A stretch of 64,000 nt of DNA from Mytilus trossulus. Taxonomy: Eukaryota. Made by a program: the position numbers and the translations under genes. The stretch is from the NCBI RefSeq assembly GCF_036588685.1, contig NC_086377.1, forward strand, positions 1,860,001 through 1,924,000. The letters run 5' to 3'. Positions within the stretch are counted from its first letter, which is position 1. Each line of letters starts with the position of its first letter. The notes beneath the pieces are model-generated. The model made no database searches. It had not been told where the DNA came from and saw only the letters and a program-made list of their open reading frames with translations. Positions 9,833-47,284 of the stretch are shown here, piece after piece.

Positions 9833-9917
9833 CTGTTTGTAGTAGTGAGTAGAGAGTATGTGTCACCTAACGAGTGTAAATGTCAACCTGGCTGGAGGGG
9901 ACATTCATGTTCTAGTA
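9833..9917 (+). CDS. EGF exon (VCSSE..VSPNECKCQPGWRGHSCSS), frameshifted near 9850
   Basis: Poly-T acceptor with AG at 9831-32; donor GTAAGT at 9918, phase 1. The two halves of the exon are in different frames. Confidence 0.75.
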
Positions 9918-10624
9918 GTAAGTAACCATAGTAACATGGTAAGTGTGTGTCACCTAACGAGTGTAAATGTCACCCTGGCTGGAGGAGACATTCATGTTCT
10001 AGTAGTAAGTAACCATAGTAACATGGAGAGTGTGTGTCACCTAACGAGTGTAAATGTCACCCTGGCTGGAGGGGACATTCATGTTCTAGTAGTAAGTAAC
10101 CATAGTAACATAGAGAGTGTGTCACCTAACGAGTGTAAATGTCACCCTGGCTGGAGGAGACATTCATGTTCTAGTAGTAAGTAACCATAGTAACATGGAG
10201 AGTGTGTATCACCTAACGAGTGTAAATGTCACCCTGGCTGGAGGGGACATTCATGTTCTAGTAGTAAGTAACCATAGTAACATGGAGAGTGTGTGTCACC
10301 TAACGAGTGTAAATGTCACCCTGGCTGGAAGGGACATTCATGTTCTAGTAGTAAGTAACCATAGTAACATAGAGAGTGTGTCACCTAACGAGTGTCAATG
10401 TCACCCTGGCTGGAGGGGACATTCATGTTCTAGTAGTAAGTAACCATAGTAACATGGAGAGTGTGCGTCACCTAACGAGTGTAAATGTCACCCTGGCTGG
10501 AGGGGACATTCATGGTCTAGTAGTAAGTAACCATAGTAACATGGAGAGTGTGTGTCATCTAACCAGTGTAAATGTCACCCTGGCTGGAGGGGACATTCAT
10601 GTTCTAGTAGTAAGTAACCATAGT
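9858..10624 (+). repeat. 87/85-bp splice-donor tandem array, 9 copies
   Basis: Unit is the exon 3' end plus GTAAGTAACCATAGT. Spacing runs 87,87,85, giving a 259-bp higher-order period. Confidence 0.95.
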
Positions 10625-10668
10625 AAGGGATTTAAACCTTAACTGTTACAGATGGGGAAACTTGATGA

Positions 10669-10862
10669 GAGGGGGTAAGAGGGTCCTGTTCCCGAAATCA
10701 GGGGCCTTAAAGCACGAAGTCCCAGGGTCCTGAATTTAAATAAATTTAATTCTGATCCAGAAATTCGTAAAAAGAATTCCCGGATCCAGAAAGGGTCAAT
10801 CCTGAAATCCTGAGCTTAAAAACCCCGATCCCAGAGTCCCGATAAAGGTTCTATCCCCCTCT
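10669..10862. mobile_element. MITE-like element; second copy at 47388-47622
   Basis: GAGGGGG...CCCCCTC inverted ends; internal CCCGAAAT/CCCGGATCC repeats are shared by both copies. Confidence 0.65.
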
Positions 10863-11228
10863 ATAATGTCTGTACAGGCAGTAAACAACGTCACCGTCTA
10901 TTTTGTTTGATTGTGTAATATCAACTCAATAAAGTATAAAATTGAGAATGAAAATGGGGAATGTGTCAAAGAGACAACAAACAGACCATATAACAGACAA
11001 CAGCAGAAGGTCACAAAAGGTCTTCAATGCAGTGAGTACATAACAATAGAACGATGTTAACAAAATATATAGTGACGTAAACAATGGATAATGAAAAGTT
11101 AAACAGCATTTAAAGTAATGTTTAAGTTTGACGCGTAAGTTGAACTGTTTCTAAATTACCGACATTTATAACATCTAGGCCATTCTTCTTGATTTGTCGA
11201 TATTGACATGTTTACAATCAATTATTAG

Positions 11229-11475
11229 GTTGTAGTGATAGTGAATGGGGAGGTAACTGTAAATTGAGATGTAATTGTAACGGACACGGATCATGTGACC
11301 CACAGACGGGACATTGTATATGTGCCGCAGGATGGACAGGAGAGAGATGTCAAACCCCTTGCAGTGAAGGAACCTATGGACCAAACTGTCGTTTAATGTG
11401 TCTTTGTCGTAATGGAGCTACCTATGACAGGACAAATGGAGCTTGTTATTGTTCAACAGGGTTCAAAGGGTCATT
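11229..11475 (+). CDS. EGF exon CSDSEWGGNCKLRCNC...CYCSTGFKGS
   Basis: TAG acceptor at 11226-28; donor GTAAGT at 11476, phase 2. Two EGF repeats; overlaps ORF 11264..11479. Confidence 0.92.
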
Positions 11476-11552
11476 GTAAGTGTCATATTACAAGACAAAA
11501 AAGCTAATTCTATTGAAAAATGGTTGCATCCCTTTTTAAAGCCGTTCAGCCG

Positions 11553-11597
11553 ACATGTGATTCAACTGGTCAATGTAAATGTCCAAGAGGCTGGACT
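11553..11597 (+). pseudogene. 3' half of an EGF exon (TCDSTGQCKCPRGWT) with no in-frame acceptor
   Basis: Donor GTAAGT at 11598 is phase 0, matching the next exon. The 5' half of the EGF repeat is absent. Confidence 0.75.
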
Positions 11598-11974
11598 GTA
11601 AGTATTTACTATCATGAATATTCATAGCATGCAAAATAAAACTCAGAATGTGTCAAAGAGACAACAACCCGACCATAGAACATACAACAGCAGAAGGTCA
11701 CTGATATGTCTTCAATGCAGCAAGAAACTCCCACACACACAGAGGCGTCATTCAGCTGGCCCCTAAACAAATATCTATACTAGTTCAGTGATAATGGATT
11801 ATAATACAATGAATTATGAATATCCATATCCCTCTTGTACAAGATTATGAATATTCATGTCCTACCAACAATGAATTCTGAATTTCTATTTGCTACGGAT
11901 TAAAAATTAGGAAAATTCTAATGCATGACACAAACAATGAATAATGACTATGCACATCTTCATCATCCTACTTT

Positions 11975-12292
11975 GTATGAATTGTGAATATTCATATCCA
12001 ACAAATGAATTGTGAATATTAATGTCCTACACACAAATGAATTGTGAATATTCATGTCCAACAAATGAATTGTGAATATTAATGTCCTACACACAAATGA
12101 ATTGTGATTATTCATATCCTACAAACAAATTAATTGTGAATATTCATATCCTACACACAAATAAATTACAATTAGTCATGTCCTACACACACATGAATTA
12201 CAATTATTCATGTCCTACACACACATGTATTATGAATATTCAAGTCCGACACACAAATGAATTGTGAATATTCATGTCCTACACACAAATGA
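11975..12292. repeat. ~28-32-bp degenerate minisatellite
   Basis: ACAAATGAATTGTGAATATTCATGTCCTACAC. Confidence 0.8.
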
Positions 12293-12969
12293 TTTATTCA
12301 TTGTTTATTTATTGAAAATTATGAATATAGTCATACCATTCAGACAATATTCATGTCAATACTTATACCAACGATGAACTGTGAGTATTTATAAGCATGA
12401 ATATTTATGTTTTTACCTACTATGAATAATGAATATGTATGTCTTTATGTGATTAGATATTGAAGGAGAATGGTAAGAATTCACCTCTCAGGACGCTTAT
12501 GTCATTCTGTTTTTGAATAACAATAATTAATGAACAAATTGAGAACTTCATCAACATATTAAGTAGATGTGTTCTGATTGCCAATGAGACAACTATCCAC
12601 CAACATTCAAATAAAGTGGATGTAAGCAACTACAGGCATCTGCTCATGAAAAATATAAATCAATTGGATTGAGAATGCTAACGACCTATTTATATCAAAA
12701 CAATTCATGAAAAACCAATATGACCGACATGAACCAACAACAACCACTAATCAATCAACAGACTTCTCATTTGTAAAATGCTTAACTCACCAGATGGACA
12801 CGAATAGAAATATATCTACCATGTCTACAGCATGGATTTGGATGAGTACTAACACATTCAAACATCAAAAGAAGCTAAATACAGATCTAAGATGTTTACG
12901 AGTTACTTACAAAGTTTTTAAAGCACTTTTCTCATAAAAAAGTTAAAAAATACTTTTGAATATTTTTAG

Positions 12970-13106
12970 GGATCGATTTGTTCAGAGCCATGCCCAGGAG
13001 GAATGTGGGGTGGAAACTGTAAAGCTCAGTGTAGATGTTACAATGGAGCTACATGTGACAGGATCACAGGACAATGTACATGTGCTCCAGGATATAAAGG
13101 AGAAAG
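12970..13106 (+). CDS. EGF exon [17 protein letters not shown]...[10 protein letters not shown]
   Basis: TTTTTAG acceptor; AG|GTAAAT donor; phase 0 in, phase 2 out. Confidence 0.92.
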
Positions 13107-15065
13107 GTAAATACAACAGATAGAACTACTAGAAGTGTACATGTACTCCCGGATATAAAGGAGAAAGGTAAATACAACAGATAAAACTACTAGAAGTGTA
13201 CATGTGCTCCCAGATATAAAGGAGAAAGGTAAATACAACAGATAAAACTACTAGAAGTGTACATGTGCTCCCAGATATAAAGGAGAAAGGTAAATACAAC
13301 AGATAAAACTACTAGAAGTGTACATGTGCTCCCGGATATAAAGGAGAAAGTTAAATACAACAGATAAAACTACTAGAAGTGTACATGTGCTCCCGGATAT
13401 AAAGGAGAAAGTTAATACAACAGATAAAACTACTAGAGTGTGTACATGTGCACCCGGATATAAAGGAGAAAGGTAAATACAACAGATAAAACTACTAGAA
13501 GTGTACATGTGCTCCCGGATATAAAGGAGAAAGGTAAATACAACAGATAAAACTACTAGAAGTGTACATGTGCTCCCGGATATATAGGAGAAAGGTAAAT
13601 ACAACAGATAGAACTACTAGAAGTGTACATGTGCTCCCGGATATAAAGGAGAAAGGTAAATATAACAGATAGAACTACTAGAAGTGTACATGTGCTCCCG
13701 GATATAAAGGAGAAAGGTAAATACAACAGATAAAACTACTAGAAGTGTACATGTGCTCCGGGATATAAAGGAGAAAGGTAAATATAACAGATAGAACTAC
13801 TAGAAGTGTACATGTGCTCCCGGATATAAAGGAGAAAGGTAAATATAACAGATAGAACTACTAGAAGTGTACATGTGCTCCCGGATATAAAGGAGAAAGG
13901 TAAATATAACAGATTGAACTACTAGAGGTGTACATGTGCACCTGGATATAAAGGAGAAAGGTAAATACAACAGATAAAACTACTAGAAGTGTACATGTGC
14001 TCCCGGATATATAGGAGAAAGGTAAATATAACAGATAGAACTACTAGAAGTGTACATGTGCTCCCGGATATAAAGGAGAAAGGTAAATATAACAGAGAAA
14101 ACTACTAGAAGTGTACATGTGCTCTCGGATATAAAGGAGAAAGGTAAATACAACAGATAAAACTACTAGAAGTGTACATGTGCTCCGGGATATAAAGGAG
14201 AAAGGTAAGTACAACAGATAGAACTACTAGAAGTGTACATGTGCTCCCGGATATAAAGGAGAAAGGTAGATATAACAGATAGAACCACTAGAAGTGTACA
14301 TGTGCTCCCGGATATAAAGGAGAAAGGTAAATACAACAGATTAAACTACTAGAAGTGTACATGTGCTCCCGGATATAAAGGAGAAAGGTAAATACAACAG
14401 ATAAAACTACTAGAAGTGTACATGTGCTCCCGGATATAAAGGAGAAAGGTAAATATAACAGATAGAACTACTAGAAGTGTACATGTGCTCCCGGATATAA
14501 AGGAGAAAGGTAAATACAACATATTAAACTACTAGAAGTGTACATGTGCTCCCGGATATAAAGGAGAAAGGTAAATACAACAGATAGAACTACTAAAAGT
14601 GTACATGTGCTCCCGGATATAAAGGAGAAAGGTAAATACAACAGATAAAACTACTAGAAGTGTACATGTGCTCCCAGATATAAAGGAGAAAGGTAAATAT
14701 AACAGATATAACTACTAGAAGTGTACATGTGCTCCGGGATATAAAGGAGAAAGGTAAATACAACAGATAGAACTACTAGAAGTGTTCATGTACTCCCGGA
14801 TATAAAGGAGAAAGGTAAATATAACAGATAGAACTACTAGAAGTGTACATGTGCTCCCGGATATAAAGGAGAAAGGTAAATACAACAGATAGAACTACTG
14901 GAAGTGTACATGTGCTCCTGGATATAAAGGAGAAAGGTAAATACAACAGATAGAACTACTAGAAGTGTACATGTGCTCCGGGATATAAAGGAGAAAGGTA
15001 AATATAACAGATAGAACTACTAGAAGTGTACATGTGCTCCCGGATATAAAAGAGAAAGGTAAATA
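13075..15065 (+). repeat. 61-bp splice-donor tandem array, ~33 copies
   Basis: Unit TGTACATGTGCTCCCGGATATAAAGGAGAAAG|GTAAATACAACAGATAGAACTACTAGAAG. Confidence 0.95.
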
Positions 15066-15408
15066 TATGACAGAGAAGTAGTACAGGCTTTATTCCTGAT
15101 TTTGACTTAAAATATTCCAATTTCTTGGTGAATTTTAAAAACAAATTAAATTGAAGAACTCTTAAAAAATGGTTTCTCCCTGAACCACACAAGTTGATTC
15201 CAAATGATTGAAAATAAATGAATTATAACTATGATTACTTCTATTCTAAATCAAATGGTGCCTGTTAGTTTCTAGACAAGAGGAAAATTCATTTAGTCGG
15301 TGTTATTAAAACATGATTTTTCCTCTCACAAATATTATGACACCATCTAATTAGATCATTGTTACGAAAACATACATGTATTTCAATTTCTGTTTATATT
15401 TTTTTCAG

Positions 15409-15551
15409 TTGTACTATTCAGTGCCCTGACGGAACATTTGGACCATACCGTTCTCAGACGTGTTCCTGTAAAAATGAAGGAACATGTGAAGCAGTAAAAG
15501 GAACATGTATCTGTCCTGTGGGTTATACTGGGATAGACTGTAATGAAAGTT
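15409..15551 (+). CDS. EGF exon CTIQCPDGTFGPYRSQTCSC...GIDCNES
   Basis: TTTTCAG acceptor; GTAAGT donor at 15552; phase 2 in, phase 1 out. Confidence 0.92.
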
Positions 15552-18500
15552 GTAAGTATCATGTGACTGTCCTGTGGGTTATACTGGGATAGACTGTACT
15601 GAAAGTAGTAAGTATCATGTGACTGTCATGTGATGGTCCTTTGGGTTATACAGGGACAGACTGTACTGAAAGTAGTAAGTATCATGTGACTGTTATGTGG
15701 GTTATACTGGAACAGACTGTACTGAAAGTAGTAAGTATCATGTGACTGTTATGTGGGTTATACTGGGACAGACTGTACTGAAAGTAGTAAGTATCATGTG
15801 ACTGTCCTGTGGGTTATACTGGGACAGACTGTAATGAAAGTAGTAAGTATCATGTGACTGTTATGTGGGTTATACTGGGACAGACTGTACTGAAAGTAGT
15901 AAGTATCATGTGACTGTCCTGTGGGTTATACTGGGACAGACTATACTGAAAGTAGTAAGTATCATGTGACTGTTCTGTGGGTTATACTGGGACAGACTGT
16001 ACTGAAAGTAGTAAGTATAATGTGACTGTCCAGTGGGTTATACTGGGACAGACTGTCCTGAAAGCAGTAAGTATCATGTGACTGTTCTGTGGGTTATACT
16101 GGGACAGACTGTACTGAAAGTAGTAAGTATCATGTGACTGTCATGTGGGGTATACTGGGACAGACTCTACTGAAAGTAGTAAGTATCATGTGACTGTCAT
16201 GTGGGTTATACTGGGACAGACTGTACTGAACGTAGTAAGTATCATGTGACTGTCCTGTGGGTTATACTGGGAGAGACTGTACTGAAAGTAGTAAGTATTA
16301 TGTGACTGTCCTGTGGATTATACTGGGACAGACTGTACTGAAAGTAGTAAGTATCATGTGACTGTCCTGTGGGTTATACTGGGACAGACTGTACTGAAAG
16401 TAGTAAGCATCATGTGACTGTCCTGTGGGTTATACTGGGACAGACTGTACTGAAAGTAGTAAGTATCATGTGACTGTCCTGTGGGTTATACTGGGACAGA
16501 CTGTACTGAAAGTAGTAAGTATCATGTGACTGTTATGTGGGTTATACTGGGACAGACTGTACTGAAAGTAGTAAGTATCATGTGACTGTTATGTGATGGT
16601 CCTTTGGGTTATACTGGGACAGACTGTACTGAAAGTAGTAAGTATCATGTGACTGTCCTGTGGGTTATACTGGGACAGACTGTACTGAAAGTAGTAAGTA
16701 TAATGTGAGTGTCATGTGGGTTATACTGGGACAGACTGTACTGAAAGTAGTAAGTATCATATGACTGTCATGTGGGTTATACTGGGACAGACTGTACTGA
16801 AAGTAGTAATTATATGTGACTGTCCAGTGGGTTATACTGGGACAGACTGTACTGAAAGTAGTAAGTATCATGTGACTGTCATGTGGGTTACACTGGGACA
16901 GACTGTACTGAAAGTAGTAAGTATCATATGACTATCATGTGGGTTATACTAGGACAGACTGTACTGAAAGTAGTAAGTATCATGTGCCTGTCATGTGGGG
17001 TATACTGGGACAGACTCTACTGAAAGTAGTAAGTATCATGTGACTGTCCTGTTGGTTATACTGGGACAGACTGTACTGAAAGTAGTAAGTATATGTGACT
17101 GTCCTGTGGGTTATACTGGGACAGACTGTACTGAAAGTAGTAAGTATCATGTGACTGTCATGTGGGTTATACTGGGACAGACTGTACTGAAAGTAGTAAG
17201 TATCATATGACTGTCATGTGGGTTATACTGGGACAGACTGTACTGAAAGTAGTAAGTATCATGTGACTGTCATGTGGGTTATACTGGGACAGACTCTACT
17301 GAAAGTAGTAAGTATCATATGACTGTCATGTGGGTTATACTGGGACAGACTGTACTGAAAGTAGTAAGTATCATGTGACTGTCCTGTGGGTTATACTGGG
17401 ACAGACTGTAATGAAAGTAGTAAGTATCATGTGACTGTTATGTGGGTTATACTGGGACAGACTGTACTGAAAGTAGTAAGTATCATGTGACTGTCCTGTG
17501 GGTTATACTGGGACAGACTATACTGAAAGTAGTAAGTATCATGTGACTGTTCTGTGGGTTACACTGGGACAGACTGTACTGAAAGTAGTAAGTATCATGT
17601 GACTGTCATGTGGGTTATACTGGGACAGACTGTACTGAAAGTAGTAAGTATCATATGACTGTCATGTGGGTTATACTGGGACAGACTGTACTGAAAGTAG
17701 TAAGTATCATATGACTGTCATGTGGGTTATACTGGGACAGACTGTACTGAAAGTAGTAAGTATCATGTGACTGTCCTGTGGGTTATACTGGGACAGACTG
17801 TACTGAAAGTAGTAAGTGTCATGTGACTCTCATGTGATGATCATGTGGGTTATACTGGGACAGACTACTCAAAGTAGTAAGTATCAGGTCACTGTCCTGT
17901 GGGTTATACTGGGACAGACTGTACTGAAAGTAGTAAGTATCATGTGACTGTTATGTGGGTGATACTGGGACAGACTGTACTGAAAGTATTGTAGCAGGAA
18001 CAATTCTGCCTAAGATTCGGGGATGCGGACCACAGCTAATTCTAGTTTGTAAACTGATGTGTGAGAAAACGACTGATGCCAAAAGTGATGCGCTATAATA
18101 TATCTAAGTAAATGAAAACCAAAAACTGTAAACAATATATAATTTAATCAGCAAAGTACAACTGTTATCATGTAAAGCCAAACGTATGTAGAAGTGGAGG
18201 ATTGAAGAAGACTTCAACTTACAGTACTAAGGAGGCATGTAGCAAATGCACTAATGTAATCGATGGTTGGAAAGCCTGGCTTTCCTTGGTTGGACTGAAT
18301 GTCAGTCCTCAGAGGGTTCAAAATAAGAATCTAAAACTAGTTATATAAAATATATAAATCTCTCGCAGAAGGTATCCAGAGAATTTGCAACGATGCAAAT
18401 ATTAAACTTTACAATTAAGATAAATATCTCTAACTAATGATTTCAAAAAGCAAAAGCTATGCGATTTAACAAATATGTACTGAATAAGCTTAATCTAAAT

Positions 18501-19367
18501 CATCAAATTAAGAAATATGAAATTTATAGTTTTAAACAAGGGAAATAATTATGACATAATAATCCTAACTGTTACAGTACTAAGTATCATGTGACTGTCC
18601 TGTGGGTTATACTGGGACAGACTGTACTGAAAGTAGTAAGTATCATGTGACTGTCACGTGATGGTCATGTGGGTTATACTGGGACAGACTGTACTGAAAG
18701 TAGTAAGTATCATGTGACTGTCCTGTGGGATATACTGGGACAGACTGTACTGAAAGTAGTAAGTATCATGTGACTGTCCTGTGGGTTATACGGGGACAGA
18801 CTGTACTGAAAGTAGTAAGTTTCATGTGACTGTCCTGTGGGTTATACTGGGACAGACTGTACTGAAAGTAGTAAGTATCATGTGACTCTCACGTGATGGT
18901 CATGTGGGTTATACTGGGACAGACTATTGAAAGTAGTAAGTATCATGTGACTGTCCTGTTGGTTATACTGGGACAGACTGTACTGAAAGTAGTAAGTATC
19001 ATGTGACTGTTATGTGGGTTATACTGGGACAGACTGTACTGAAAGTAGTAAGTATCATGTGACTGTCCTGTGGGTTATACTGGGACAGACTGTACTGAAA
19101 GTAGTAAGTATCATGTGACTGTCCTGTGGGTTATACTAGGACAGACTGTACTGAAAGTAGTAAGTATCATGTGACTGTCCTGTGGGTTATACTGGGAGAG
19201 AATGTACTGAAAGTAGTAAGTATCATGTGACTGTCATGTGACTGTCCTGTGGGTTATACTGGGACAGACTGTACTGAAAGTAGTAAGTATCATGTGACTG
19301 TTCTGTGGGGTATACTGGGACAGACTGTACTGAAAGTAGTAAGTAGCATGTGACTGTCATGTGACTG
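15511..19367 (+). repeat. 56-bp splice-donor tandem array, ~55 copies, interrupted by a solo LTR
   Basis: Unit CTGTCCTGTGGGTTATACTGGGACAGACTGTACTGAAAGTA|GTAAGTATCATGTGA. Confidence 0.95.
17990..18576. mobile_element. Solo LTR-like insertion (587 bp)
   Basis: Termini TGTAGCAG...CTGTTACA (TG..CA, 7/8 inverted match); flanks GTAT/GTAC resemble a 4-bp TSD; the array resumes in register. Confidence 0.75.
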
Positions 19368-19518
19368 TTATTTGCAGATATATATACCCTCACTCTAAGA
19401 TAGGGACTAATTGATATCACATCTGTTTGTATTTAAGGCTTCTTCATATATCAATTCTTTCAACTATTATTTTGTCACACTATACAGAAATGTTATCATA
19501 CTATTGTTCTGTTTTCAG

Positions 19519-19588
19519 ATTGTCCATCTTTTAAGTACGGAGAGAAGTGTCAAAAGGATTGTAAATGTAACAGAAAAACTACAGATCA
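19519..19588 (+). CDS. EGF half exon CPSFKYGEKCQKDCKCNRKTTD
   Basis: TTTTCAG acceptor; GTAAGT donor; phase 1 in, phase 2 out. Confidence 0.9.
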
Positions 19589-20145
19589 GTAAGTAGTCTC
19601 CCTTTGTGATACACCTGTTTACAGGATGTGTTATGGTATCCTGCTGTCTGTCTGTCCGTCTATTTTCCACATGTCAGACAATAACTTAAAAATTATTCAA
19701 GCGTGATTGATGAGTCTTTTGTTGTCACTACCCGTGTCTGTTGTAAATATAAAATTTCAATCCTGGTGTCTATGATGAGTTATTTACCTGTTCTTTTATC
19801 AGTTGTTCAATCAAATCGTTGGATCTCTTTAAGTTTCTGTTTTCGCGTATATCACAATCGACCTACAACTAGAAATAAGCTTGAAAATATTTATAAAACA
19901 AAGATTTTACTCCATTTTCACGGTCCACTGAACATATAAAATGATAGTGAGGATAGGGCATCTGTATACTAGGGACACATTATTGTTACATCTACTATAC
20001 CTAAATTTATTTTCTACATTTGAAAAACATGGTGACGTAGTTGTGATGTCATCTAGTCTGATGACAGAGGTTGATTGATTTATAGAGTTATCTGATTGGT
20101 CAGGTAGTTGTGATGTCATCCAGATATTATTTTTTTGTTTTATAG

Positions 20146-20333
20146 GTGTGACCAGGGGAATGGGAAGTGTAGTAAATGTTCCAGTGGATGGACTGGTCCC
20201 CTGTGTAATGAGACTTGCCCAGCTCCATACTATGGTGATGGATGTCAGAAGATCTGTTACTGTAAGAATGGTGGACTTTGTAATCATAAAACTGGATAGT
20301 TTGTCAATGTCAAGCTGGTTACACAGGACAATA
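20146..20333 (+). CDS. EGF exon CDQGNGKC...NHKTG/fs/VCQCQAGYTGQ, frameshifted at 20297-98
   Basis: TTTATAG acceptor; GTATGT donor at 20334. An extra TA creates an in-frame TAG. Confidence 0.85.
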
Positions 20334-20764
20334 GTATGTTTAATAGACTTTCAGATAGTATTAGCCAATCATATAGTATGTATCATAGACTTTGAGATAG
20401 TATTAGCCAATCATATAGTATGTATCATACACTTTGATATAGTGTTAGCTAGCCAATCATATAGTATGTATCATACACTTTGAGATAGTATTAGCCAATC
20501 TTATAGTATGTATCATACACTTTGAGATAGTATTAGCCAATCATATAGTATGTTTAATAGACTTTCAGATAGTATTAGCCAATCATATAGTATGTATCAT
20601 AGATTTTGACATAGTATTAGCCAATCATATAGTATGTATCCTACACTTTGAGATAGTATTAGCTAGCCAATCATATAGTATGTATCATACACTTTGAGAT
20701 AGTATTAGCCAATCTTATAGTATGTATCATACACTTTGAGATAGTTTTAGCCAATCATATAGTA
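20331..20764 (+). repeat. 42-bp array starting at a donor (ATA|GTATGT), ~10 copies
   Basis: Unit ATAGTATGTATCATAGACTTTGAGATAGTATTAGCCAATCAT. Confidence 0.9.
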
Positions 20765-21301
20765 CTGTGAAAGTACTTTAATTTGGGGTATAAAAAACCA
20801 TGAAAATCAGTACACCACAAATAAAAAGTACTTTCACAGAATGTATCATAGACTTTCAGATAGTTTTAGCCAATTGTATGTATTATATACTGTGGAATAA
20901 TTTATTTTCATTGGTATCAATTTTTCATATGGCCTCCAACAGTGAGAAAACCCCATACCAGCTAGACGGCTTTAAAAGGCCCCATTGTGACTAGGATTTT
21001 AAGCTCTGACAGCATGAATTGGGGATTTGATGGTCGCAAATTTTTTTTTTTGGCGACGCGTTAGCGGAAACAGTAAACGGGTATTTGCCACCATCAAATC
21101 CCAAATTGATGCCATCAGAGCTTAAAATACAATATTGTTATCTCCATTCTAATGAAACTGACAGAAAACAATGTTAAAACATGTATTTAAAATTTGTCAT
21201 ATGCCGTCTTGGGCTTGGGCGTACGTTTCATAACATCAATTGTCAATTGATGCCATGTAAGAAGTTATCCAATCAAAATGAACGTTACAAACGTTGTTGC
21301 A

Positions 21302-21787
21302 TTAGAATGTTTATTTAACAGTTGTGAAACTAAATGTACGAAGGGAAAGTTTGGTTTAGAACGTTTATTGTTTATTTTACAGTTGTGGAACTAAATGTAC
21401 GAAGGGAAAGTATGGTTTAGAATGTTTATTGTTTATTTTACAGTTGTGGAACTAAATGTACGAAGGGAAAGTTTGGTTTAGAACGTTTATTGTTTTTTTT
21501 ACAGTTGTGGAACTAAATGTACGAAGGGAAAGTTTGGTTTAGAACGTTTATTGTTTATTTTACAGTTGTGGAACTAAATGTACGAAGGGAAAGTTTGGTT
21601 TAGAACGTTTATTGTTTATTTTACAGTTGTGGAACTAAATGTACGAAGGGAAAGTTTGGTTTAGAACGTTTATTGTTTATTTTACAGTTGTGGAACTAAA
21701 TGTACGAAGGGAAAGTTTGGTTTAGAACGTTTATTGTTTATTTTACAGTTGTGGAACTAAATGTACGAAGGGAAAGTTTGGTTTAGG
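21302..21787 (+). repeat. 61-bp splice-acceptor tandem array, 8 copies
   Basis: Unit ...TTTATTTTACAG|TTGTGGAACTAAATGTACGAAGGGAAAGTTTGGTTTAG. Confidence 0.95.
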
Positions 21788-21861
21788 ATGTCAACAGACT
21801 TGTCTTTGTCAGAACAATGCTGAGTGTGTACCTGAGAATGGATTCTGTATTTGTTCACCAG
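21749..21861 (+). CDS. EGF exon CGTKCTKGKFGLGCQQTCLC...CICSP
   Basis: Last acceptor of the 61-bp array; G|GTGAGA donor; phase 2 in, phase 1 out. Confidence 0.9.
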
Positions 21862-21871
21862 GTGAGAGACT

Positions 21872-22060
21872 GATAGTTTAACCAATCATGTAGTATGTCT
21901 CATACAGTTTGTGATAGTTTAACCAATCATGTAGTATGTCTCATACAGTTTGTGATAGTTTAACCAATCATGGTAGTATGTATCATACAGTTTGTGATAG
22001 TTTAACCAATCATGTAGTATGTTTCATAGACTTTGTGATAGTTTTAGCTAATCATAAAGT
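21872..22060 (+). repeat. ~41-bp tandem repeat related to the 20331 unit
   Basis: GATAGTTTAACCAATCATGTAGTATGTCTCATACAGTTTGT, 4-5 copies. Confidence 0.85.
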
Positions 22061-22489
22061 TTGTATTATCAGTTTATGATGCACTTGCATGGATGATGCA
22101 GAGAGGAGCCAGTAAAATTATTATTTGTGATGGCCAAAACCTAATTTGACAGTGGCAACTCATAAAATACAATATGATTCCTATTCTTATGCAATACTAT
22201 TACCAAGATCAAAATTAGATATTTTTAATTTGCCAACAATGTTACCAATGACTTAGACCTTTAACCAAGAAATCTTGGCAATCATCTAAATGAAATTGGT
22301 TCTACATGACTTAAAGCATTTGTACTTAACTAATTTATTACATTTATTACCAAAATATTTTTTCTGATATTTGTTTGTTGAGCTTTTCCATTTAAGAACA
22401 TAAAAATATTCAAGCATATCATTTCTCCAGCTTTTGTGAATTCAAGGCATCATACTACCTGTGATTCGAATGTGAATTGAAGTTATAAA

Positions 22490-34309: not shown

Positions 34310-34392
34310 GTGTGACAATGGAGGGTTATGTGATTATAGATCAGGGAAGTGTATCTGTTTACCTGGCTTTAGAGGAGATTTCTGTCAAGCTG
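34261..34392 (+). CDS. EGF exon CPKGTSGVDCLDKCPKC...GDFCQA
   Basis: Last acceptor of the 69/72-bp array; G|GTAATT donor; phase 1 in and out. Confidence 0.92.
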
Positions 34393-34679: not shown

Positions 34680-36065
34680 TGACATAAAATTGGCAAAAAT
34701 CTAACAGTCACATGACATTAAATTGACAACAAAGTCACATGACATAAAAGTGACAACAATCTGTCAGTCACATGACATAAAAATGACAACAATATACCAG
34801 TAACATTACATAAAAGTGACAACAATCTACCAGTCACATTACATAAAAGTGACAACAATCTAACAGTCACATGACATAAAATTGACAACAATCTACCAGT
34901 CACATGACATAAAAGTGACAACAATCTACCAGTCACATGACATAAAAGTGACAACATTCTTCCAGTCACATGACATAAAAGTGACAACAATCTACCAGTC
35001 ACATGACATAAAAGTGACAACAATCTACCAGTTACTTGACATAAAAGTAACAACAATCTACCAGTCAGATGACATAAAAGTGACAACAATCTACCAGTTA
35101 CTTGACATAAAAGAGACAACAATCTACCAGTCAGATGACATAAAAGTGACAACAATCTACCAGTCAGATGACATAAAAGTGACAACAATCTACCAGTCAC
35201 ATGACATAAAAGTGACAACAATCTACCAGTCATATGACATAAACATGACAACAATCTACCAGTCACATGACATAAAAGTGACAACAATCTACCAGTCACA
35301 TGACATAAAAGTGACATCAATCTACCAATCACGTGACGTAAAAGTGACAACAATCGGTCAGTAATATGACATAAAAGTGACAACAATCTACCAGTCACAT
35401 GACATAAAAGTGACAACAATCTGTCAGTCACATGACATAAAAGTGACAACAATCTACCAGTCACATCACATAAAAGTGACAACAATCTGGCAGTCACATC
35501 ACATAAAAGTGACAACCATATGGCAGTCACATCACATAAAAGTGACAACAATCTACCAGTCACATGACATAAAAGTGACAACAATCTGTCAGTCACATGA
35601 CATAAAAGTGACAACAATCTACCAGTCACATCACATAAAAGTGACAACTATATGACAGTCACATGACATAAAAGTGACAACAATCTACCAGTCAGATGAC
35701 ATAAAAGTGACAACAATCTACCAGTTACTTGACATAAAAGTCACAACCATAGGCATGACATAAAAGTGACAATCATGTGGCAGTCACATGACATAAAAGT
35801 GACAACCATATGGCAGTCAAATGACATAAAAGTGAAAACTATATGGCAGTCACATGACATAAAAGTGACAACCATATCCAAGTCACATGACATAAAAGTG
35901 ACAACCATTTGCCAGTCACATGACATTAAAGTGACAGCCATATGGCAGTCACATGACATAAAAGTGACAGCCATATGGAAGTCACATGACATAAAAGTTA
36001 CAACCATATGTCAGTCACATGACATAAAAATTACAATAATCCATTCATATGACATAAAAGTCAAT
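34680..36065. repeat. 33-bp minisatellite, ~40 copies
   Basis: GACATAAAAGTGACAACAATCTACCAGTCACAT. Confidence 0.95.
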
Positions 36066-36222: not shown

Positions 36223-36351
36223 AGTGTCCAAAGTCCAAATATGGTATAGGATGTAAAACCACATGTAACTGTGAGAATCAAGCATACTGTCGACCAAGTG
36301 ATGGCTTCTGTAAATGTTTACCTGGCTACATGGGAGTCACATGTTCTCAAA
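36223..36351 (+). CDS. EGF exon CPKSKYGIGCKTTCNC...GVTCSQ
   Basis: ACAG acceptor; GTAAGT donor; phase 1 in and out. Confidence 0.92.
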
Positions 36352-36873
36352 GTAAGTCACATGATCTCATAGCTAGTCACATGATCTCAAAATTTAAGTC
36401 ACATGGTCTTAAGAGTAAGTCAAATGATCTTAGAGTAAGTCAAATGATCTCAGAGTAAATCACATGGTCTCAGAGTAAGTCAAATGGTCTAAGAGTAAGT
36501 CAAATGATCTCAGAGTAAGTCACATGGTCTCAGAGTGAACCAATAGTCTCAGAGTAAGTCACATGGTCTTAGAGTAAGTCACATGATTTCAGAGTAAGTT
36601 ATATGGTCTTATAGTAAACCAAATGATCTCAGAGTAAGTCACATGGTCTAAGAGTAAGTCACATGGTCTTAGAGTAAGTCACATGTTCTCAAAGTAAGTC
36701 ACATGGTCTAAGAGTAAGTCAAATGATCTCAGAGTAAGTCACATGGTCTTAGAGTAAGTCAAATGATCTCAGAGTAAGTCACATGTTGTCAGTGTAAGTC
36801 ACATAATCTCAAAAGTAAGTCACATGGTGTCAGAGTAAGTCACCTGGTCTCAGAGTAAGTCACATGATATCAG
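36335..36873 (+). repeat. 20-bp splice-donor tandem array, ~27 copies
   Basis: Unit CACATGGTCTCAGA|GTAAGT. Confidence 0.92.
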
Positions 36874-37065
36874 ATGAAATATATTTGTATGTTCCTTGCC
36901 ATTTTTACCCTCGTCTTTCTGTATGTTTGTCCGTAGGTACATCTCAAAATGGTTTCCATTCTCTAAATTAAGTTTTCTTCATCCAAATATCAAGAAACTT
37001 ATGCAAAACCTTTTTATTTTAAAACTCAGATTAAATTTGGAATTTTGATGGCATCACTTTTATTG

Positions 37066-37382
37066 TTCTAGAGTTATGTCCCTTTATTATGGTATATGTT
37101 CTTGAGTTATGTCCCTTTATTATGGTATATATGTTCTTGAGCTATGTCCCTTTATTATGGTATATGTTCTCGAGTTATGTCCCTTTAGTATGGTATATAT
37201 ATTCTAGAGTTATTTCCCTTTATTTATTGTATATGTTCTTGAGTTATGTCCCTTTATTATAGTATATATGTTCTTAAGTTATGTCCCTTTATTATGGTAT
37301 ATGTTCTTGAGTTATGTCCCTTTATTATGGTATATGTTCTTGAGTTATGTCCCTTTATTATGGTATATATGTTCTTGAGTTT
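37066..37382. repeat. 33-35-bp minisatellite, ~9 copies
   Basis: TTCTTGAGTTATGTCCCTTTATTATGGTATATG. Confidence 0.85.
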
Positions 37383-37664: not shown

Positions 37665-37754
37665 CCTGCACTACTGGGTATTATGGAGAAAACTGCGCAA
37701 AGCAATGTCAATGTACAGACAAACAGGAATGTAACCCGGTGTATGGGTGTATAG
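37665..37754 (+). CDS. Last, partial EGF exon CTTGYYGENCAKQCQC...YGCI
   Basis: TTTTCAG acceptor; AG|GTATGT donor; phase 1 in and out. Confidence 0.9.
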   Translation, partial: PALLGIMEKTAQSNVNVQTNRNVTRCMGV

Positions 37755-39213: not shown

Positions 39214-39417
39214 GAAGAGATGCAGTAGGACATATCATTTCACCTTCTGAGACGGCCCCTCAAGAATCGGATCCAGCTGTTGCCATAGTGACAGTAATGA
39301 TTGTGTTGTTTCTATTGGTCGTATTGTTTGTAGGAGTTTACATGTACAGGAGAATGAGCAGATTGAAAAAAGAGAATGAAATCCTGAACTCTGTTCACTT
39401 CTCTAGTTCACAATCTG
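39214..39417 (+). CDS. Transmembrane exon (PAVAIVTVMIVLFLLVVLFVGVYMY-RRMSRLKK)
   Basis: Strong pyrimidine tract plus CAG; hydrophobic helix followed by basic residues; G|GTGAGT donor at 39418. Confidence 0.92.
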
Positions 39418-40935
39418 GTGAGTACCTCAACTCTATTCACTTCTTAAGTTCACAATCCGGTGAGTACCTCAACACTGCTCACTTCTCTAGTACACAATCA
39501 GGTGAGTACCTCAACACTGTTCACTTCTCTAGTTCACAATCAGGTGAGTACCTCAACTCTGCTCACTTCTCTAGTACACAATCAGGTGAGTACCTCAACT
39601 CTGTTCACTTCTCTAGTTCACAATCTGGTGAGTACCTCAACTCTGTTCACTTCTCTAGTTCACAATCAGGTGAGTACCTCAACTCTGTTCACTTCTCTAG
39701 TTCACAATCTGGTGAGTACCTCAACTCTGTTCACTTCTCTAGTTCACAATCAGGTGAGTACCTCAACTCTGTTCACTTCTCTAGTTCACAATCTGGTGAG
39801 TACCTCAACTCTGTTCACTTCTTTAGTTCACAATCTGGTGAGTACCTCAACTCTGCTCACTTCTCTAGTACACAATCAGGTGAGTACCTCAACACTGTTC
39901 ACTTCTCTAGTTCACAATCAGGTGAGTACCTCAACTCTGCTCACTTCTCTAGTACACAATCTGGTGAGTACCTCAACTCTGTTCACTTCTCTAGTTCACA
40001 ATCTGGTGAGTACCTCAACTCTGTTCACTTCTCTAGTTCACAATCAGGTGAGTACCTCAACTCTGTTCACCTCTCTAGTTCACAATCTGGTGAGTACCTC
40101 AATTATGTTCACTTCTCTAGTTCACAATCTGGTGAGTACATCAACTCTGTTCACTTCTCTAGTTCACAATCAGGTGAGTAATTTGGTGAGTACCTCAATT
40201 CTATTCACTTCTCTAGTTCACAATCTGGTGTGTACCTCAACTCTGTTCACTTCTCTAGTTCACAATCAGGTGAGTACCTAAACTCTGTTCACTTCTCTAG
40301 TTCACAATATGGTGAATACCTCAACTCTGTTCACTTCTCTAGTTCACAATCTGGTGAGTACCTAAACTCTGTTCACTTCTCTAGTTCACAATTTGGTAAA
40401 TACCTCAACTTTGTTCACTTCTCTAGTTCACAATCAGGTGAGTACCTCAACTCTGTTCACTTCTCTAGTTCACAATTTGGGGAATACCTCAACTCTGTTC
40501 ACTTCTCTAGTTCACAATCTGGTGAGTACCTCAACTCTGTTCACTTCTCTAGTTCACAATCTGGTGAGTACCTCAACTCTGTTCACTTCTCTAGTTCACA
40601 ATCAGGTGAGTACCTTAACTCTGTTCACTTCTCTAGTTCACAATTAGGTGAGTACCTCAACTCTGTTCACTTCTCTAGTTCACAATCTGGTGAGTACCTC
40701 AACTCTGTTCACTTCTCTAGTTCACAATCTGGTGAGTACCTCAACTCTGTTCACTTCTCTAGTTCACAATCTGGTGAGTACCTCAACTCTGTTCACTTCT
40801 CTAGTTCACAATCAGGTGAGTACCTTAACTCTGTTCACTTCTCTAGTTCACAATCTGGTGAGTACCTCAACTCTGTTCACTTCTCTAGTTCACAATCAGG
40901 TAAGTACCTCAACTCTGTTCACAATCAGGTGAGTA
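39387..40935 (+). repeat. 42-bp in-frame splice-donor tandem array, ~36 copies
   Basis: Unit AACTCTGTTCACTTCTCTAGTTCACAATCTG|GTGAGTACCTC, which translates as GEYLNSVHFSSSQS. Confidence 0.95.
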
Positions 40936-40957
40936 ATTTACTGGACATTTAAAGATA

Positions 40958-41163: not shown

Positions 41164-41171
41164 TAATCGGT

Positions 41172-42311
41172 TATACAGTGTCTAGTAAGTAATACTTTAG
41201 GTCAGAAATTGTCAGTTTTACCGTGTCTAGTAAGTAATACTTTAGGTCAGAAATTGTCAGTTTATACCGTGTCTAGTAAGTAATACTTTAGGTCAGAAAT
41301 TGTCAGTTTATACCGTGTCTAGTAAGTAATACTTTAGGTCAGAAATTGTCAGTTTTACCGATCTAGTAAGTAATACTTTAGGTCAGAAATTGTCAGTTTT
41401 ACCGTGTCTAGTAAGTAATACTTAAGGTCAGAAATTGTCAGTTTTACAGTGTCTAGTAAGTAATACTTTAGGTCAGAAATTGTCAGTTTTACCGTATCTA
41501 GTAAGTAATACTTTAGGTCAGAAATTGTCAGTTTTACCGTATCTAGTAAGTAATACTTTAGGTCAGAAATTGTCAGTTTATACCGTGTCTAGTAAGTAAT
41601 ACTTTAGGTCAGAAATTGTCAGTTTATACCGTGTCTAGTAAGTAATACTTTAGGTCAGAAATTGTCAGTTTATACCGTGTCTAGTAAGTAATACTTTAGG
41701 TCAGAAATTGTCAGTTTATACCGTGTCTAGTAAGTAATACTTTAGGTCAGAAATTGTCAGTTTTACCGTGTCTAGTAAGTAATACTTTAGGTCAGAAATT
41801 GTCAGTTTTACAGTGTCTAGTGAGTAATACTTTAGGTCAGACATTGTCAGTTTTACAGTGTCTAGTAAGTTATATTTTAGGTCAGAAATTGTCAGTTTTA
41901 CAGTGTCTAGTAAGTAATACTTTAGGTCAGAAATTGTCAGTTTTACAGTGTCTAGTAAGTAATACTTAAGGTCAGAAATTGTCAGTTTTACAGTGTCTAG
42001 TAAGTAATACTTTAGCTCAGAAATTGTCAGTTTTACCGTGTCTAGTAAGTAATACTTTAGGTCAGAAATTGTCAGTTTTACAGTGTCTAGTAAGTAATAC
42101 TTTAGGTCAGAAATTGTCAGTTTTACAGTGTCTAGTAAGTAATACTTTAGGTCAGAAATTGTCAGTTTTACAGTGTCTAGTAAGTAATACTTTAGGTCAG
42201 ACATTGTCAGTTTTATCGTGTCTAGTAAGTAATACTTTAGGTCAGAAATTGTCAGTTTTACCGTGTCTAGTAAGTAATACTTTAGGTCAGAAATTGTCAG
42301 TTTTACCGTGT
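41172..42311. repeat. 45/46-bp minisatellite, ~25 copies
   Basis: GTGTCTAGTAAGTAATACTTTAGGTCAGAAATTGTCAGTTTTACC. Confidence 0.95.
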
Positions 42312-43062
42312 CCAACTTCATTTCATCGATTGATTGGCGTTTCAAGGCCACTTTTAAGGGCCACTTTTGGGCTTTTTTGTGGCGACAATTTTTTATTGGT
42401 GGAGGAAGCCGGAGAGTGTCCAGTGAAGGACACTGACCTTTTATAGGGAATCTGACAAACCTGGTCAATTGAGATTGGACTCCAGTGAACCTTGAACTCA
42501 CAACCTCAGTGTTGACTGGCTAGTGATGACAGTAGTGACTACTTCGACAACTCAGCGTCTTATGCTTCTACTTCATTTGACACCCCCACATCACATGATC
42601 ATTGAAAAAGAAGGATCAGGATTGCCTACAATTTACAAATCAATCGAGAAGCAAATTCAACCACTTTATCTGATGTGCTATAAAAGATCTCTACCCCAAC
42701 AGTTAGATATTAAGAATTTGAATTACTCACCAAGTCTTTAAAAAAAATTTAGCTACTCTAAGCTCTTAGAAAAAAAAGTTTCTTTAACCAAACATGCTTT
42801 CATTAACATTATTAGTTATTTGTTGGATAGGTGTTTTATTGGCAACTGTCACCACATCTCATTGTGTTATTGTAATTTCATGGTTCACATGTATCTATGA
42901 AATACACAAAAATTGGTATCCAATGAATAATGAATCCACATGTTGAAAAGGAATATATAATCCTCAGTAGATGTATGACATACTTATAAATAAAATATAT
43001 TAACCTCAGTTCTCAGCCTCAGTAGATATGACTTACTTATAAAATGTTATCTTCTTTTGCAG

Positions 43063-43812: not shown

Positions 43813-43837
43813 GTATGTACTATGATAAATATTTTTA

Positions 43838-44130
43838 TTATGCCCCATTTATGGGCATCATGTTTTCTGGTCTGTGCGTCCTTCCGTCCATTCTTCCGTC
43901 CAACCGTTCTTCTGTCCATTCGTCCCACTTCAGGTTGAAGTTTTTGGTTGAGGTAGTTTTTGATAAAGTTGAAGTCCAATCAATTTGAAACTTAGTAAAC
44001 ATGTTCCCTATGCTATGATCTTTCTAATTTTAATGCCAAATTAGAGATTTTATCCCATTTTCATGGTCCACTGAACATAGAAAATGATAGTGCAGATGGG
44101 GCATCTGTGTATTTTGGACACATTCTTGTT
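43838..44130 (+). mobile_element. Helentron-associated (HINE/DINE-like) element; related copies at ~19610-19988 and, reversed, 52698-52986
   Basis: T-run boundaries, ATGCCCC..GGGCAT subterminal inverted repeats, CCGT-type microsatellite, 3' hairpin. Confidence 0.65.
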
Positions 44131-44426
44131 AGTCAATAATTTCCTGATTTATAAATACCTAAATAGCCCAGGTCGCATACTTAGAAGCCCCTGTACTTAA
44201 ACAGCATCACTTGACCATTTACCTTTATCAGGAACGCTCAAAGCAAAACATTCGAAATATGAGGATGTATAAGTACCGAAAATCATTAAAAATACCTTAA
44301 ATGATAGCCAAATTCATCTTTAAAGTCAACTTTGCCTGAGGGAGTTGAAACCTTAGTTTCTAATAATTTCAAAATTTATAAAAGGAAAATTTTAGTAAAG
44401 TTTGTTAAATCATGTCAGTATCAAAG

Positions 44427-45530
44427 TACTGACTACTGAGATGATGATACCCTCAGGGACTGATAGTCCATCAGCAGAGATAACTGGGCCTCACTTGACC
44501 AGGGAAATAATCAAATGAGACTTTATTTGAAATATACACCTTCTCCTCGGTACTGACTACTGAGCTGATGATACCCTCAGGGACTGATAGTCCACCAGCA
44601 GAGATAACTGAGCCTCACTTGACCAGGGAAATAATCAAATGAGACTTTATTTGAAATAAACGCCTTCTCCTCGATACTGAATATCAATACATCTGACTAC
44701 TGATCTGATGATACCTTCAAGGACTGATAGTCCACCATCAGAGATAACTGGGCCTCACTTGACCCGGGAAATAATCAAATGAGACTTTATTTGAAATAAA
44801 CGCCTTCTCCTCGATACTGAATATCAATACATCTGACTACTGATCTGATGATACCCTCAGGGACTGATAGTCCACCATCAGAGATAACTGGGCCTCACTT
44901 GACCCGGGAAATAATCAAATGAGACTTTATTTGAAATAAACGCCTTCTCCTCGATACTGAATATCAATACATCTGACTACTGATCTGATGATACCTTCAA
45001 GGACTGATAGTCCACCATCAGAGATAACTGGGCCTCACTTGACCCGGGAAATAATCAAATGATACTTTATTTGAAATAAACGCCTTCTCCTCGATACTGA
45101 ATATCAATACATCTGACTACTGATCTGATGATACCCTCAGGGACTGATAGTCCACCATCAGAGATAACTGGGCCTCACTTGACCCGGGAAATAATCAAAT
45201 GAGACTTTATTTGAAATAAACGCCTTCTCCTCGATACTGAATATCAATACATCTGACTACTGATCTGATGATACCTTCAAGGACTGATAGTCCACCATCA
45301 GAGATAACTGGGCCTCACTTGACCCGGGAAATAATCAAATGAGACTTTATTTGAAATAAACGCCTTCTCCTCGATACTGAATATCAATACATCTGACTAC
45401 TGATCTGATGATACCCTCAGGGACTGATAGTCCACCATCAGAGATAACTGGGCCTCACTTGACCCGGGAAATAATCAAATGAGACTTTATTTGAAATATA
45501 CACCTTCTCCACGGTACTGATTATCAATAC
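44427..45530. repeat. 140-bp tandem repeat, ~8 copies
   Basis: ATATCAATACATCTGACTAC recurs at 44681, 44821, 44961, 45101, 45241 and 45381. Confidence 0.95.
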
Positions 45531-45677
45531 ACCTATTGACCTGTTTCTGGTTTGAAAAAATATTAATGCAAATCTGTGACTGTTTGAAAATAAGGTTGAT
45601 ATAAAAACCCAAAATTGGTATTTTATTTCGTATTTAAAGGTTCCAAAACTATTCAAAATATTATGCATGTATATATT

Positions 45678-46157
45678 CAGTGTAACCTGCCTAATCCATC
45701 ACCTCCGTATTCCATCATTCTGTCTTAACAGACACATTTTCATGGTTCCACATGTGTCTTTCCCTGCAGAAGTAACCTGACTATGTGGTACCTCAGTTGG
45801 ATGAATTATATAAGTTATGGTTCGCTTCTGACCCCCGACGGATCCATAGACATGATAGAGGGTTAGTTAAATCCAAAGGGGTTGAGGTCGGAGGCCAAAT
45901 CCCCTATGAGTTTGATTCACCCTCTATGGATCTGAAGGGGGTCAATAGTTGACCGTATAACAAATTTATAGCACGCTGGACTTTTTCTGCTGCGTTTTGT
46001 TGAAAAATAAACAATTAAACACAACAACATTATTAGATGACGTCACAATTAACGCGTCACAAACCGCCTACTGTCTCATAATGGATCACCACGTAAGGGC
46101 ATTTAACCAATCACAACGTGATAATTTATCTGTGGACCGATAACACAGGTTACACTG
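45678..46157. mobile_element. Tc1/mariner-type MITE carrying a nested hairpin element
   Basis: Same CAGTGTAACCTG TIRs as 37939-38111, but ~300 bp longer and with an internal palindrome. Confidence 0.7.
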
Positions 46158-46239
46158 TATACATGGTTTATGTGCATTTTATTAAATTTCTGTGCGACCC
46201 AGCTTATATGTTTACAATGTATATTGTTTTTTTCACCAG

Positions 46240-46289
46240 ATTCCATAGATTCCATAGAAGAAGAAAAGAAGAGAAACAATATGAAGTGA
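46240..46289 (+). CDS. Candidate last coding exon (D)SIDSIEEEKKRNNMK*
   Basis: TTTTTTTCACCAG acceptor; phase 1 reading ends at TGA 46287-89; possible CAG|GTGTGT donor at 46298. Confidence 0.5.
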
Positions 46290-47284
46290 TATGTCAGGTG
46301 TGTATACAATATGAAGTGATATGTCAGGTGTGTAAACAATATGAAATAATATGTCAGGTGTGTATACAATATGAAGTGATATGTCAGGTGTGTATACAAT
46401 ATGAAGTGATATGTCAGGTGTGTAAACAATATGAAGTGATATGTCAGGTGTGTATACAATATGAAGTGATATGTCAGGTGTGTAAACAATATGAAGTGAT
46501 ATGTCAGGTGTAAGTGATATGTCAGGAGTGTATACAATATGAAGTGATATGTCAGGTGTGTAAACAATATGAAGTGATATGTCAGGTGTGTATACAATGT
46601 GAAGTGATATGTCAGGTGTGTAAACAATGTGCAGTGCTATGTCAGGTGTGTATACAATGTGCAGTGCTATGTCAGGTGTGTATACAATATGAAGTGATAT
46701 GTCAGGTGTGTATACAATATGAAGTGATATGTCAGGTGTGTATACAATATGAAGTGATATATCAGGTGTGTATACAATATGAAGTGATATGTCAGGTGAT
46801 ATATCAGGTTTGTATACAATATGAAGTGATATGTCAGGTGTGTATACAATATGAAGTGTGTATACAATATGAAGTGATATGTCAGGTGTGTAAACAATAT
46901 GAAGTGATATATCAGGTGTGTAAACAATATGAAGTGATATATCAGGTGTGTATACAATATGAAGTGATATGTCAGGTGTGTATACAATTTGAAGTGATAT
47001 GTCAGGTGTGTAAACAATATGAAGTGATATGTCAGGTGTGTATACAATGTGAAATGATATATTAGGTGTGCATACAATATGAAGTGATATGTCAGGTGTG
47101 TATACAATATGAAGTGATATGTCACGTGTGTATACAATATGAAGTGATATGTCAGGTGTGTATACAATATGAAGTGATATATCAGGTGTGTATACAATAT
47201 GAAGTGATATATCAGGTGTGTAAACAATATGAAGTGATATATCAGGTGTGTATACAATATGAAGTGATATGTCAGGTGTGTATA
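46276..47284 (+). repeat. 30-bp tandem array covering the putative stop codon and donor, ~34 copies
   Basis: Unit ACAATATGAAGTGATATGTCAG|GTGTGTAT. Confidence 0.92.

Follow-up and report, generated by a model that had tools for sequence, protein, structure and literature searches.

Introduction

Tandem repeats that cross exon-intron boundaries have been described in amphioxus as 'mirages' (PMC3087553, PMC3902484), a name that these two papers attribute to Canestro et al. 2002. The amphioxus genes concerned are Adh3 (several arrays, 10-72 bp), TnC, the globins BflGb6 and BflGb9, and PGBD5; in the globins both sides of introns, acceptor and donor, are affected, array length differs between haplotypes, splicing is undisturbed, and the origin of the arrays was called unclear (PMC3087553, PMC3902484). 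In humans, junction-spanning variable-number tandem repeats (VNTRs) occur in intervening sequence (IVS) 7 of F7 (37 bp, 5-9 copies), CBS IVS13, IFI6 (6-16) intron 2, LMNB2 and PDGF intron 4; F7, LMNB2 and PDGF splice from the most upstream donor only, and in IFI6 and CBS two pseudo-sites are used in addition (PMC1557585). Here we describe ten arrays along a multi-EGF (MEGF/PEAR1-like) receptor gene of Mytilus trossulus, nine of them placed on exon-intron junctions, within a stretch of 64,000 nucleotides (C5:1860001-1924000; hereafter, the window).

The Mytilus arrays belong to the known, named class of mirages, within which their number in one gene and their size are extreme; the first-pass annotation of the window had taken them for a class without a name. 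As with the mirages of amphioxus (units 10-160 bp), the unit spans the boundary, donor and acceptor sides are both affected, several arrays occur in one gene, the AG or GT is kept, and copy number varies, between haplotypes there and between gene copies here. In contrast to amphioxus, the host is a mollusc and thus of a different phylum, ten or eleven junctions are involved in a single gene, arrays reach 148 units (9 kb), and there is evidence of genome-wide over-representation. Amphioxus mirages have support from reverse transcription PCR, whereas those of Mytilus are known from genomic sequence alone. As in the human VNTRs, the first monomer spans the boundary and supplies the authentic donor, and identical pseudo-donors follow; the human arrays are length-polymorphic. 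The human cases differ from the Mytilus gene in having one array per gene, of 5-26 units and always on the donor side, and in that site choice was tested experimentally. We found no published report of mirages in molluscs in the literature.

A further relative is the Rogers model, in which an intron is gained when an AGGT proto-splice site is duplicated in tandem (PMC2891723, PMC4974935). There, as proposed here, a tandem duplication copies splice signals and the intervening segment is removed as intron. The Rogers duplication is exon-internal and yields a new intron, whereas in Mytilus existing junctions are amplified and existing introns would grow. We considered intron gain of this type for the Mytilus gene and rejected it: the arrays all contain a junction that was there before, the order of exons and the EGF periodicity run on unbroken, and no new intron position was seen.

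Results

Splice junctions of a multi-EGF gene are amplified into tandem arrays

All evidence was taken from the assembled sequence. Exon after exon, the cysteine-rich open segments on the + strand of the window give hits to Pfam EGF_laminin and EGF_PEAR1L, and one 83-residue exon used as query returned thousands of multi-EGF proteins; homology searches were made with single exons. Exon ends were set by reading frame, GT/AG sites and the regular recurrence of the EGF cysteines. This applies to each of the exons E1-E15 (9833-39417) in the following list, the EMI-domain exon having been located by tblastn with the N-termini of homologues.

9339-9438, + strand, EMI-domain exon (in-frame TAA, donor destroyed)
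9833-9917, + strand, E1
11229-11475, + strand, E2
12970-13106, + strand, E3
15409-15551, + strand, E4
19519-19588, + strand, E5
20146-20333, + strand, E6
21749-21861, + strand, E7
23428-23592, + strand, E8
24239-24347, + strand, E9
25104-25250, + strand, E10
26458-26598, + strand, E11
34261-34392, + strand, E12
36223-36351, + strand, E13
37665-37753, + strand, E14
39214-39417, + strand, E15 (transmembrane exon)

Cytoplasmic exons are probable near 43.0-43.8 kb.

Tandem Repeats Finder (TRF) recovered all ten arrays that the first-pass annotation had reported, each in its place, and eight further arrays within the gene. The annotation had put all ten on exon junctions, one of them tentatively; this holds for nine, placed by frame and EGF pattern, while the tenth (D30) follows a candidate 58-nt exon that lacks homology support. 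The junction arrays have TRF periods of 20-87 bp, 8-58 copies and 80-98% matches. Each unit joins the edge of an exon to the splice signal next to it, and at one end of the array the copy runs on into the rest of the exon. The arrays, named here by side (D, donor; A, acceptor) and unit length, are as follows.

9852-10626, + strand, D87: nine units of 87 bp, 66 nt of E1 end plus 21 nt of intron
13075-15065, + strand, D61: 33 units of 61 bp, 32 nt of E3 end plus 29 nt of intron
15504-19363, + strand, D56: ~58 units of 56 bp in two blocks, 48 nt of E4 end plus the 8-nt donor core GTAAGTAT
20331-20764, + strand, D42a: ten units of 42 bp, 3 nt of exon plus 39 nt of intron, with the E6 donor GTATGT
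21308-21786, + strand, A61: eight units of 61 bp, 14 nt of pyrimidine tract plus AG, then 47 nt of E7 start
22487-23451, + strand, A68: 14 units of 68 bp, 44 nt of intron plus 24 nt of E8 start
33339-34309, + strand, A69: 14 units of 69 bp, 23 nt of intron plus 46 nt of E12 start
36335-36874, + strand, D20: 27 units of 20 bp, 17 nt of E13 end plus 3 nt of intron (GTA)
39383-40922, + strand, D42b: 36 units of 42 bp, 35 nt of E15 end plus GTGAGTA
46276-47285, + strand, D30: 32 units of 30 bp (22 plus 8 nt), CAG/GTGTGT in each unit, junction tentative

The two blocks of D56 are separated by a 588-bp stretch at 17988-18576. The intron part of A68 holds a TACTGAC branch-like site, a pyrimidine tract and the AG. 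D20, with a unit-to-unit identity of ~83%, is the oldest array.

The splice signals are almost perfectly kept. When each unit was fitted to the consensus of its array, the GT was intact in 186 of the 191 donor units examined and the AG in all 36 acceptor units (8/8 in A61, 14/14 in A68 and 14/14 in A69), in agreement with the earlier statement that most units retain them. Counting the second D56 block there are ~240 splice-signal units and hence ~230 decoy sites, in line with the 200 or more duplicate sites first estimated. The exon-contiguous copy does come first in donor arrays and last in acceptor arrays, as had been pointed out; this is the mere geometry of any array that spans a junction and adds no further finding. 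The arrays had also been described as unrelated to one another, which proved incorrect in one case: D42a is 90% identical to I41, a 41-bp array in the next intron (at 21871), a family that occurs nowhere else in the genome. A dispersed satellite or transposon-borne repeat was considered as the source of the arrays and rejected; the 61-bp and 42-bp units, the two that were searched, are confined to two copies of the gene.

A second gene copy carries the same arrays at different sizes

A search with the 61-bp unit led to a collinear second copy of the gene at C5:1.243-1.296 Mb, 610 kb upstream of the window copy. The second copy is 96-100% identical in unique DNA over 11.0-52.8 kb of the window, and merely 82% identical further 5'. 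Compared with C5:1236001-1276000, the window copy has five disabling lesions within 9339-23592. The EMI exon is interrupted by a TAA stop and has lost its donor, E1 lacks 8 nt, E6 carries an insertion of 2 bp, and a poly-A run of E8 carries one of 1 bp. All five sites are intact in the second copy. Judged by these lesions, the window copy is a pseudogene, a decayed duplicate, and the second copy is probably the working gene.

The second copy allowed the comparison of paralogues that the first-pass annotation had proposed. It carries nine of the ten junction arrays, D87 being the one missing, at widely different sizes, listed below together with those of three other arrays of the gene; the sizes compared are those of paralogous copies, not of proven alleles.

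D61, 61-bp donor array: 33 units (2.0 kb) in the window, 148 (9.0 kb) in the second copy
D56, 56-bp array: ~58 units (3.9 kb) in the window, 17 (1.0 kb) in the second copy
A69, 69/72-bp acceptor array: 14 units (1.0 kb) in the window, 63 (4.4 kb, period 72) in the second copy
A61, 61-bp acceptor array: 8 units in the window, 3 in the second copy
I95, 95-bp array: 56 units in the window, ~3 in the second copy
140-bp array: 7 units in the window, 2 in the second copy
45-bp array at 41170-42312: 25 units in the window, 57 in the second copy

Mean unit identity is equal within and between copies (0.83-0.97), and thus the pools of unit variants are older than the gene duplication. Consistent with this, units diverge by 3-17%, more than the 1-4% that separates the two copies, and comparison of unit identities within and between copies revealed no homogenisation after the copies split. 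The arrays of the dead window copy resemble those of the intact copy. Taken together, these findings suggest that the arrays arose in a working ancestor and that the window copy decayed afterwards.

One irregularity is common to both copies. No in-frame GT-AG pair joins E2 to E3 (11468-11480 and 12963-12975) in either copy, and the EGF pattern nonetheless continues across them; the cause may be a lesion that both copies share, an error in a homopolymer or an unusual mode of splicing.

Array births and a proposed mechanism

Two array births can be read from counterparts that are still single-copy. The second copy has an intact, single-copy E1, and two AACAT pentamers lie there exactly 87 bp apart at the later unit boundaries, the signature of slippage between short direct repeats at the birth of the 87-bp array. 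The internal units of D87 retain ancestral exon sequence that has been lost from the damaged, exon-contiguous unit. The reverse situation is found at E9, where the window is single-copy and only the second copy has a young acceptor array (five 42-bp units, 95-100% identical, each made of 24 intronic and 18 exonic nt). The microhomology at its boundaries is at most 1-2 nt. This array is the only clear one to have arisen since the copies split, and it is again on a junction.

We consider it probable that the arrays are mirage minisatellites, born by local tandem duplication across an exon-intron boundary and amplified later, with the extra units silent. At birth, short direct repeats would allow slippage or template switching, by which a short segment holding an exon edge and its splice signal is duplicated in tandem. 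Growth would follow by unequal exchange or replication slippage, with blocks of units gained or lost; such gain and loss is shown by the array sizes, which differ between copies that draw on a single pool of unit variants and match each other at 96-100% in unique DNA. The two copies show both birth mediated by microhomology and growth by unequal exchange. By analogy with the published cases, the arrays would be tolerated if the spliceosome takes the exon-proximal site, i.e. the first donor or the last acceptor. The extra units would then be removed as intron, while a duplication wholly internal to an exon would break the protein. The net effect would be intron growth amounting to 60% of the E1-E15 span, together with ~230 silent decoy splice sites.

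Several observations weigh against this account. Exclusive use of the exon-proximal site is an assumption borrowed from other species. In addition, GT columns vary less than the other columns of the unit (5 mismatches vs 16.5 expected, P = 0.04), and a comparison of the 6-nt donor core with other unit columns is borderline (P = 0.05); this constraint on the GT columns hints at weak selection, which a purely neutral account does not predict. Finally, the account gives no cause for a bias of the arrays toward junctions.

Tandem arrays are over-represented at splice junctions

The first-pass annotation had proposed that duplication is biased toward junctions. As a test within the gene, each array was collapsed to a single unit and 15 seeds of the observed unit lengths were placed at random, excluding seeds that were wholly exon-internal or that swallowed a whole exon. 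Collapse shortens E1-E15 from 31,090 to 12,452 bp, so that 18.6 kb (60%) of the span consists of extra array copies, which bears out the earlier suggestion of intron growth. The collapsed span holds 29 junctions and is 17% exon. Nine of the 15 arrays in E1-E15 lie on junctions compared to 1.9 expected (Poisson-binomial P = 1.5e-5; P = 1.5e-4 without D42a, which overlaps its exon by 3 nt), and the seed units contain 321 exon-derived bases compared to 56 expected.

Genome-wide, we counted three occurrences of the donor word AGGTRAGT at minisatellite spacing, and did likewise for three control words of the same composition.

Spacing 12-42 nt: donor word 797, its reverse 537, unrelated word 394, reverse of the unrelated word 149
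Spacing 43-73 nt: donor word 2284, its reverse 998, unrelated word 632, reverse of the unrelated word 480

With both spacings summed, the donor word had 3081 matches vs 1535, 1026 and 629 for the controls. A random sample of 200 kb of the genome contained the four words, in the same order, 9, 18, 9 and 7 times, and first-order Markov expectations were 10.8, 15.1, 11.3 and 8.7. Since the background frequency of the donor word is similar to or lower than that of the controls, these counts amount to a ~3-fold genome-wide excess of the donor consensus. For the hexamer GTAAGT alone there was no raw genome-wide excess over its reverse (13,474 vs 14,558); the reverse is twice as common in background DNA.

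These tests have weaknesses that count against a junction bias. The P value obtained within the gene is inflated, as the window was picked for this very feature. The genome-wide test used one 8-mer and three controls, and large arrays dominate its match counts. Distinct arrays on C1 are few: at the short spacing there are at least 12 for the donor word vs 3 and 8 for the two listed controls, and at the long spacing, in the first 58 Mb of C1, 13 vs 6. Overall, we hold with moderate confidence that a junction bias exists. A cause was sought in base composition, with GC bias as a candidate reason for exon-proximal seeding; intronic array units have a GC of 0.354 vs 0.319 for the intron background, a difference that is not significant with 8 arrays. 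Tandem duplications might be seeded at junctions by a real mutational bias, for example through replication or repair errors where polymerase or spliceosome pause in germline-expressed genes, a possible cause that we put forward only tentatively. The annotation had offered a duplication process coupled to transcription or splicing, which might, as pure inference, be entertained.

Less likely still is that no real junction bias exists, and that seeding was uniform, exon-internal arrays were purged and the window happened to be picked in a repeat-rich chromosome end. The setting of the gene lends this some weight. The genome measures 1.3 Gb, in large contigs of 63-113 Mb, and the AT-rich window (GC ~0.33) is 1.86 Mb away from one end of an 88-Mb contig of chromosome scale, or 2% of its length. 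The whole window is rich in arrays: arrays with at least five copies number ~7 in 200 kb of random genome (~0.35 per 10 kb), compared to 4.8 per 10 kb in the gene. To this may be added that the window was selected on its junction arrays and that the genome-wide excess is just ~2-4-fold, with few control words. Against uniform seeding with purging, the permutation already omitted exon-internal seeds and still gave 1.9 junction arrays compared to the nine observed; moreover, the sole clear array birth after the copies split was again on a junction, and throughout the genome the donor word exceeds its controls at the short as well as the long spacing.

As a separate observation, perfect-donor-consensus arrays crowd the ends of C1, with 5 of 12, among the matches listed, in its terminal 11%. 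The minisatellites of this genome thus seem, as this suggests, to be concentrated near chromosome ends, and contig-end position may explain part of the array richness.

Coding potential and functional readings of the arrays

D42b is the only array that keeps a frame open across its units. Its unit equals 14 codons, and the exon frame is open over 36 units save for one stop at 40179. Its variants comprise 9 synonymous and 13 non-synonymous changes (n = 22), a synonymous share of 0.41 vs 0.22 expected, which amounts to weak constraint at best. A second frame is likewise open, and the indications that D42b might be translated are weak. The open exon frame and the synonymous share, together with the slightly higher conservation of GT columns (P = 0.04) and the use of two pseudo-sites besides the real site in human IFI6 and CBS (PMC1557585), are what could be expected if the arrays were functional ladders of splice sites whose internal units make isoforms (e.g. 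14-residue, Tyr-containing repeats in the cytoplasmic tail) or recruit U1/U2 to regulate splicing. We regard this as very unlikely: in six of the seven donor arrays the unit has a length not divisible by 3 or bears a stop, D42b has its second open frame, the arrays of the pseudogene look like those of the intact copy, and F7, LMNB2, PDGF and the amphioxus mirages use the genuine site only (PMC1557585, PMC3087553, PMC3902484).

Assembly artefacts, i.e. mis-assembled repeats or an uncollapsed haplotype, are scarcely credible. The same arrays, with their unit variants, recur at two loci that lie 610 kb apart and were assembled separately, the shared segment is sharply bounded with a 5' part only 82% identical, and the units show ordinary substitution patterns and higher-order periods. 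A misplaced haplotype is conceivable in principle for the second copy, and would simply make the comparison allelic.

Other tandem arrays in and around the gene

The gene also contains the following arrays.

11977-12292, + strand, intronic non-junction array: ten units of 32 bp
21871-22080, + strand, intronic array I41: five units of 41 bp, starting 10 nt past the E7 donor
24480-24764, non-junction array: 31-bp units
26639-31981, + strand, intronic array I95: 56 units of 95 bp, starting 40 nt past the E11 donor
34680-36061, non-junction array: 33-bp units
37064-37381, non-junction array: 33-bp units
41170-42312, intronic array: 25 units of 45 bp
44553-45531, non-junction array: 140-bp units

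The 45-bp array at 41170-42312 has a perfect GTAAGT in each unit, and no exon was recognised before it; it may be the junction array of an unrecognised or extinct exon. Outside the gene, a 33-bp array at 56613-61801 has 157 copies and an extreme strand skew (GC skew ~ -0.7), and further arrays of the window lie at 3957-5176 (30 units of 41 bp), 50554-50836 (seven of 42 bp) and 63515-63904 (ten of 38 bp). The second gene copy is adjoined by a 48-bp satellite of at least 400 copies (>19 kb) at C5:1296703-1316000, which extends past the stretch examined. A random 10-kb sample, C3:15200001-15210000, is nearly full of related 70-240-bp tandem repeats with a GGATCC-containing motif, probably a satellite or transposon-derived array.

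Discussion

Two aspects of the locus are new. The gene in the window is a decayed duplicate with five disabling lesions, and a copy 610 kb away has nine of the ten arrays at other copy numbers; and two array births, those of D87 and of the 42-bp acceptor array at E9, can be read from single-copy counterparts. Junction-spanning minisatellites have so far been single-gene curiosities whose origin the describing papers call unclear. A genome with hundreds of mirages would let births be read from pairs of gene copies, and would let junctions be tested as hot spots of tandem duplication. Dozens of identical competing sites also constitute a natural test of how the spliceosome chooses among them. 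In practical terms, the arrays inflate introns (60% of the gene span) and plant hundreds of perfect decoy sites, which are a trap for gene predictors and read mappers in this genome and in related ones.

If a mutational bias toward junctions is real, the M. trossulus genome would be expected to hold hundreds to thousands of mirage arrays, which would be a major route of intron growth and a source of raw material for new exons and introns. It would then be the first genome in which the origin of mirages is open to statistical study.

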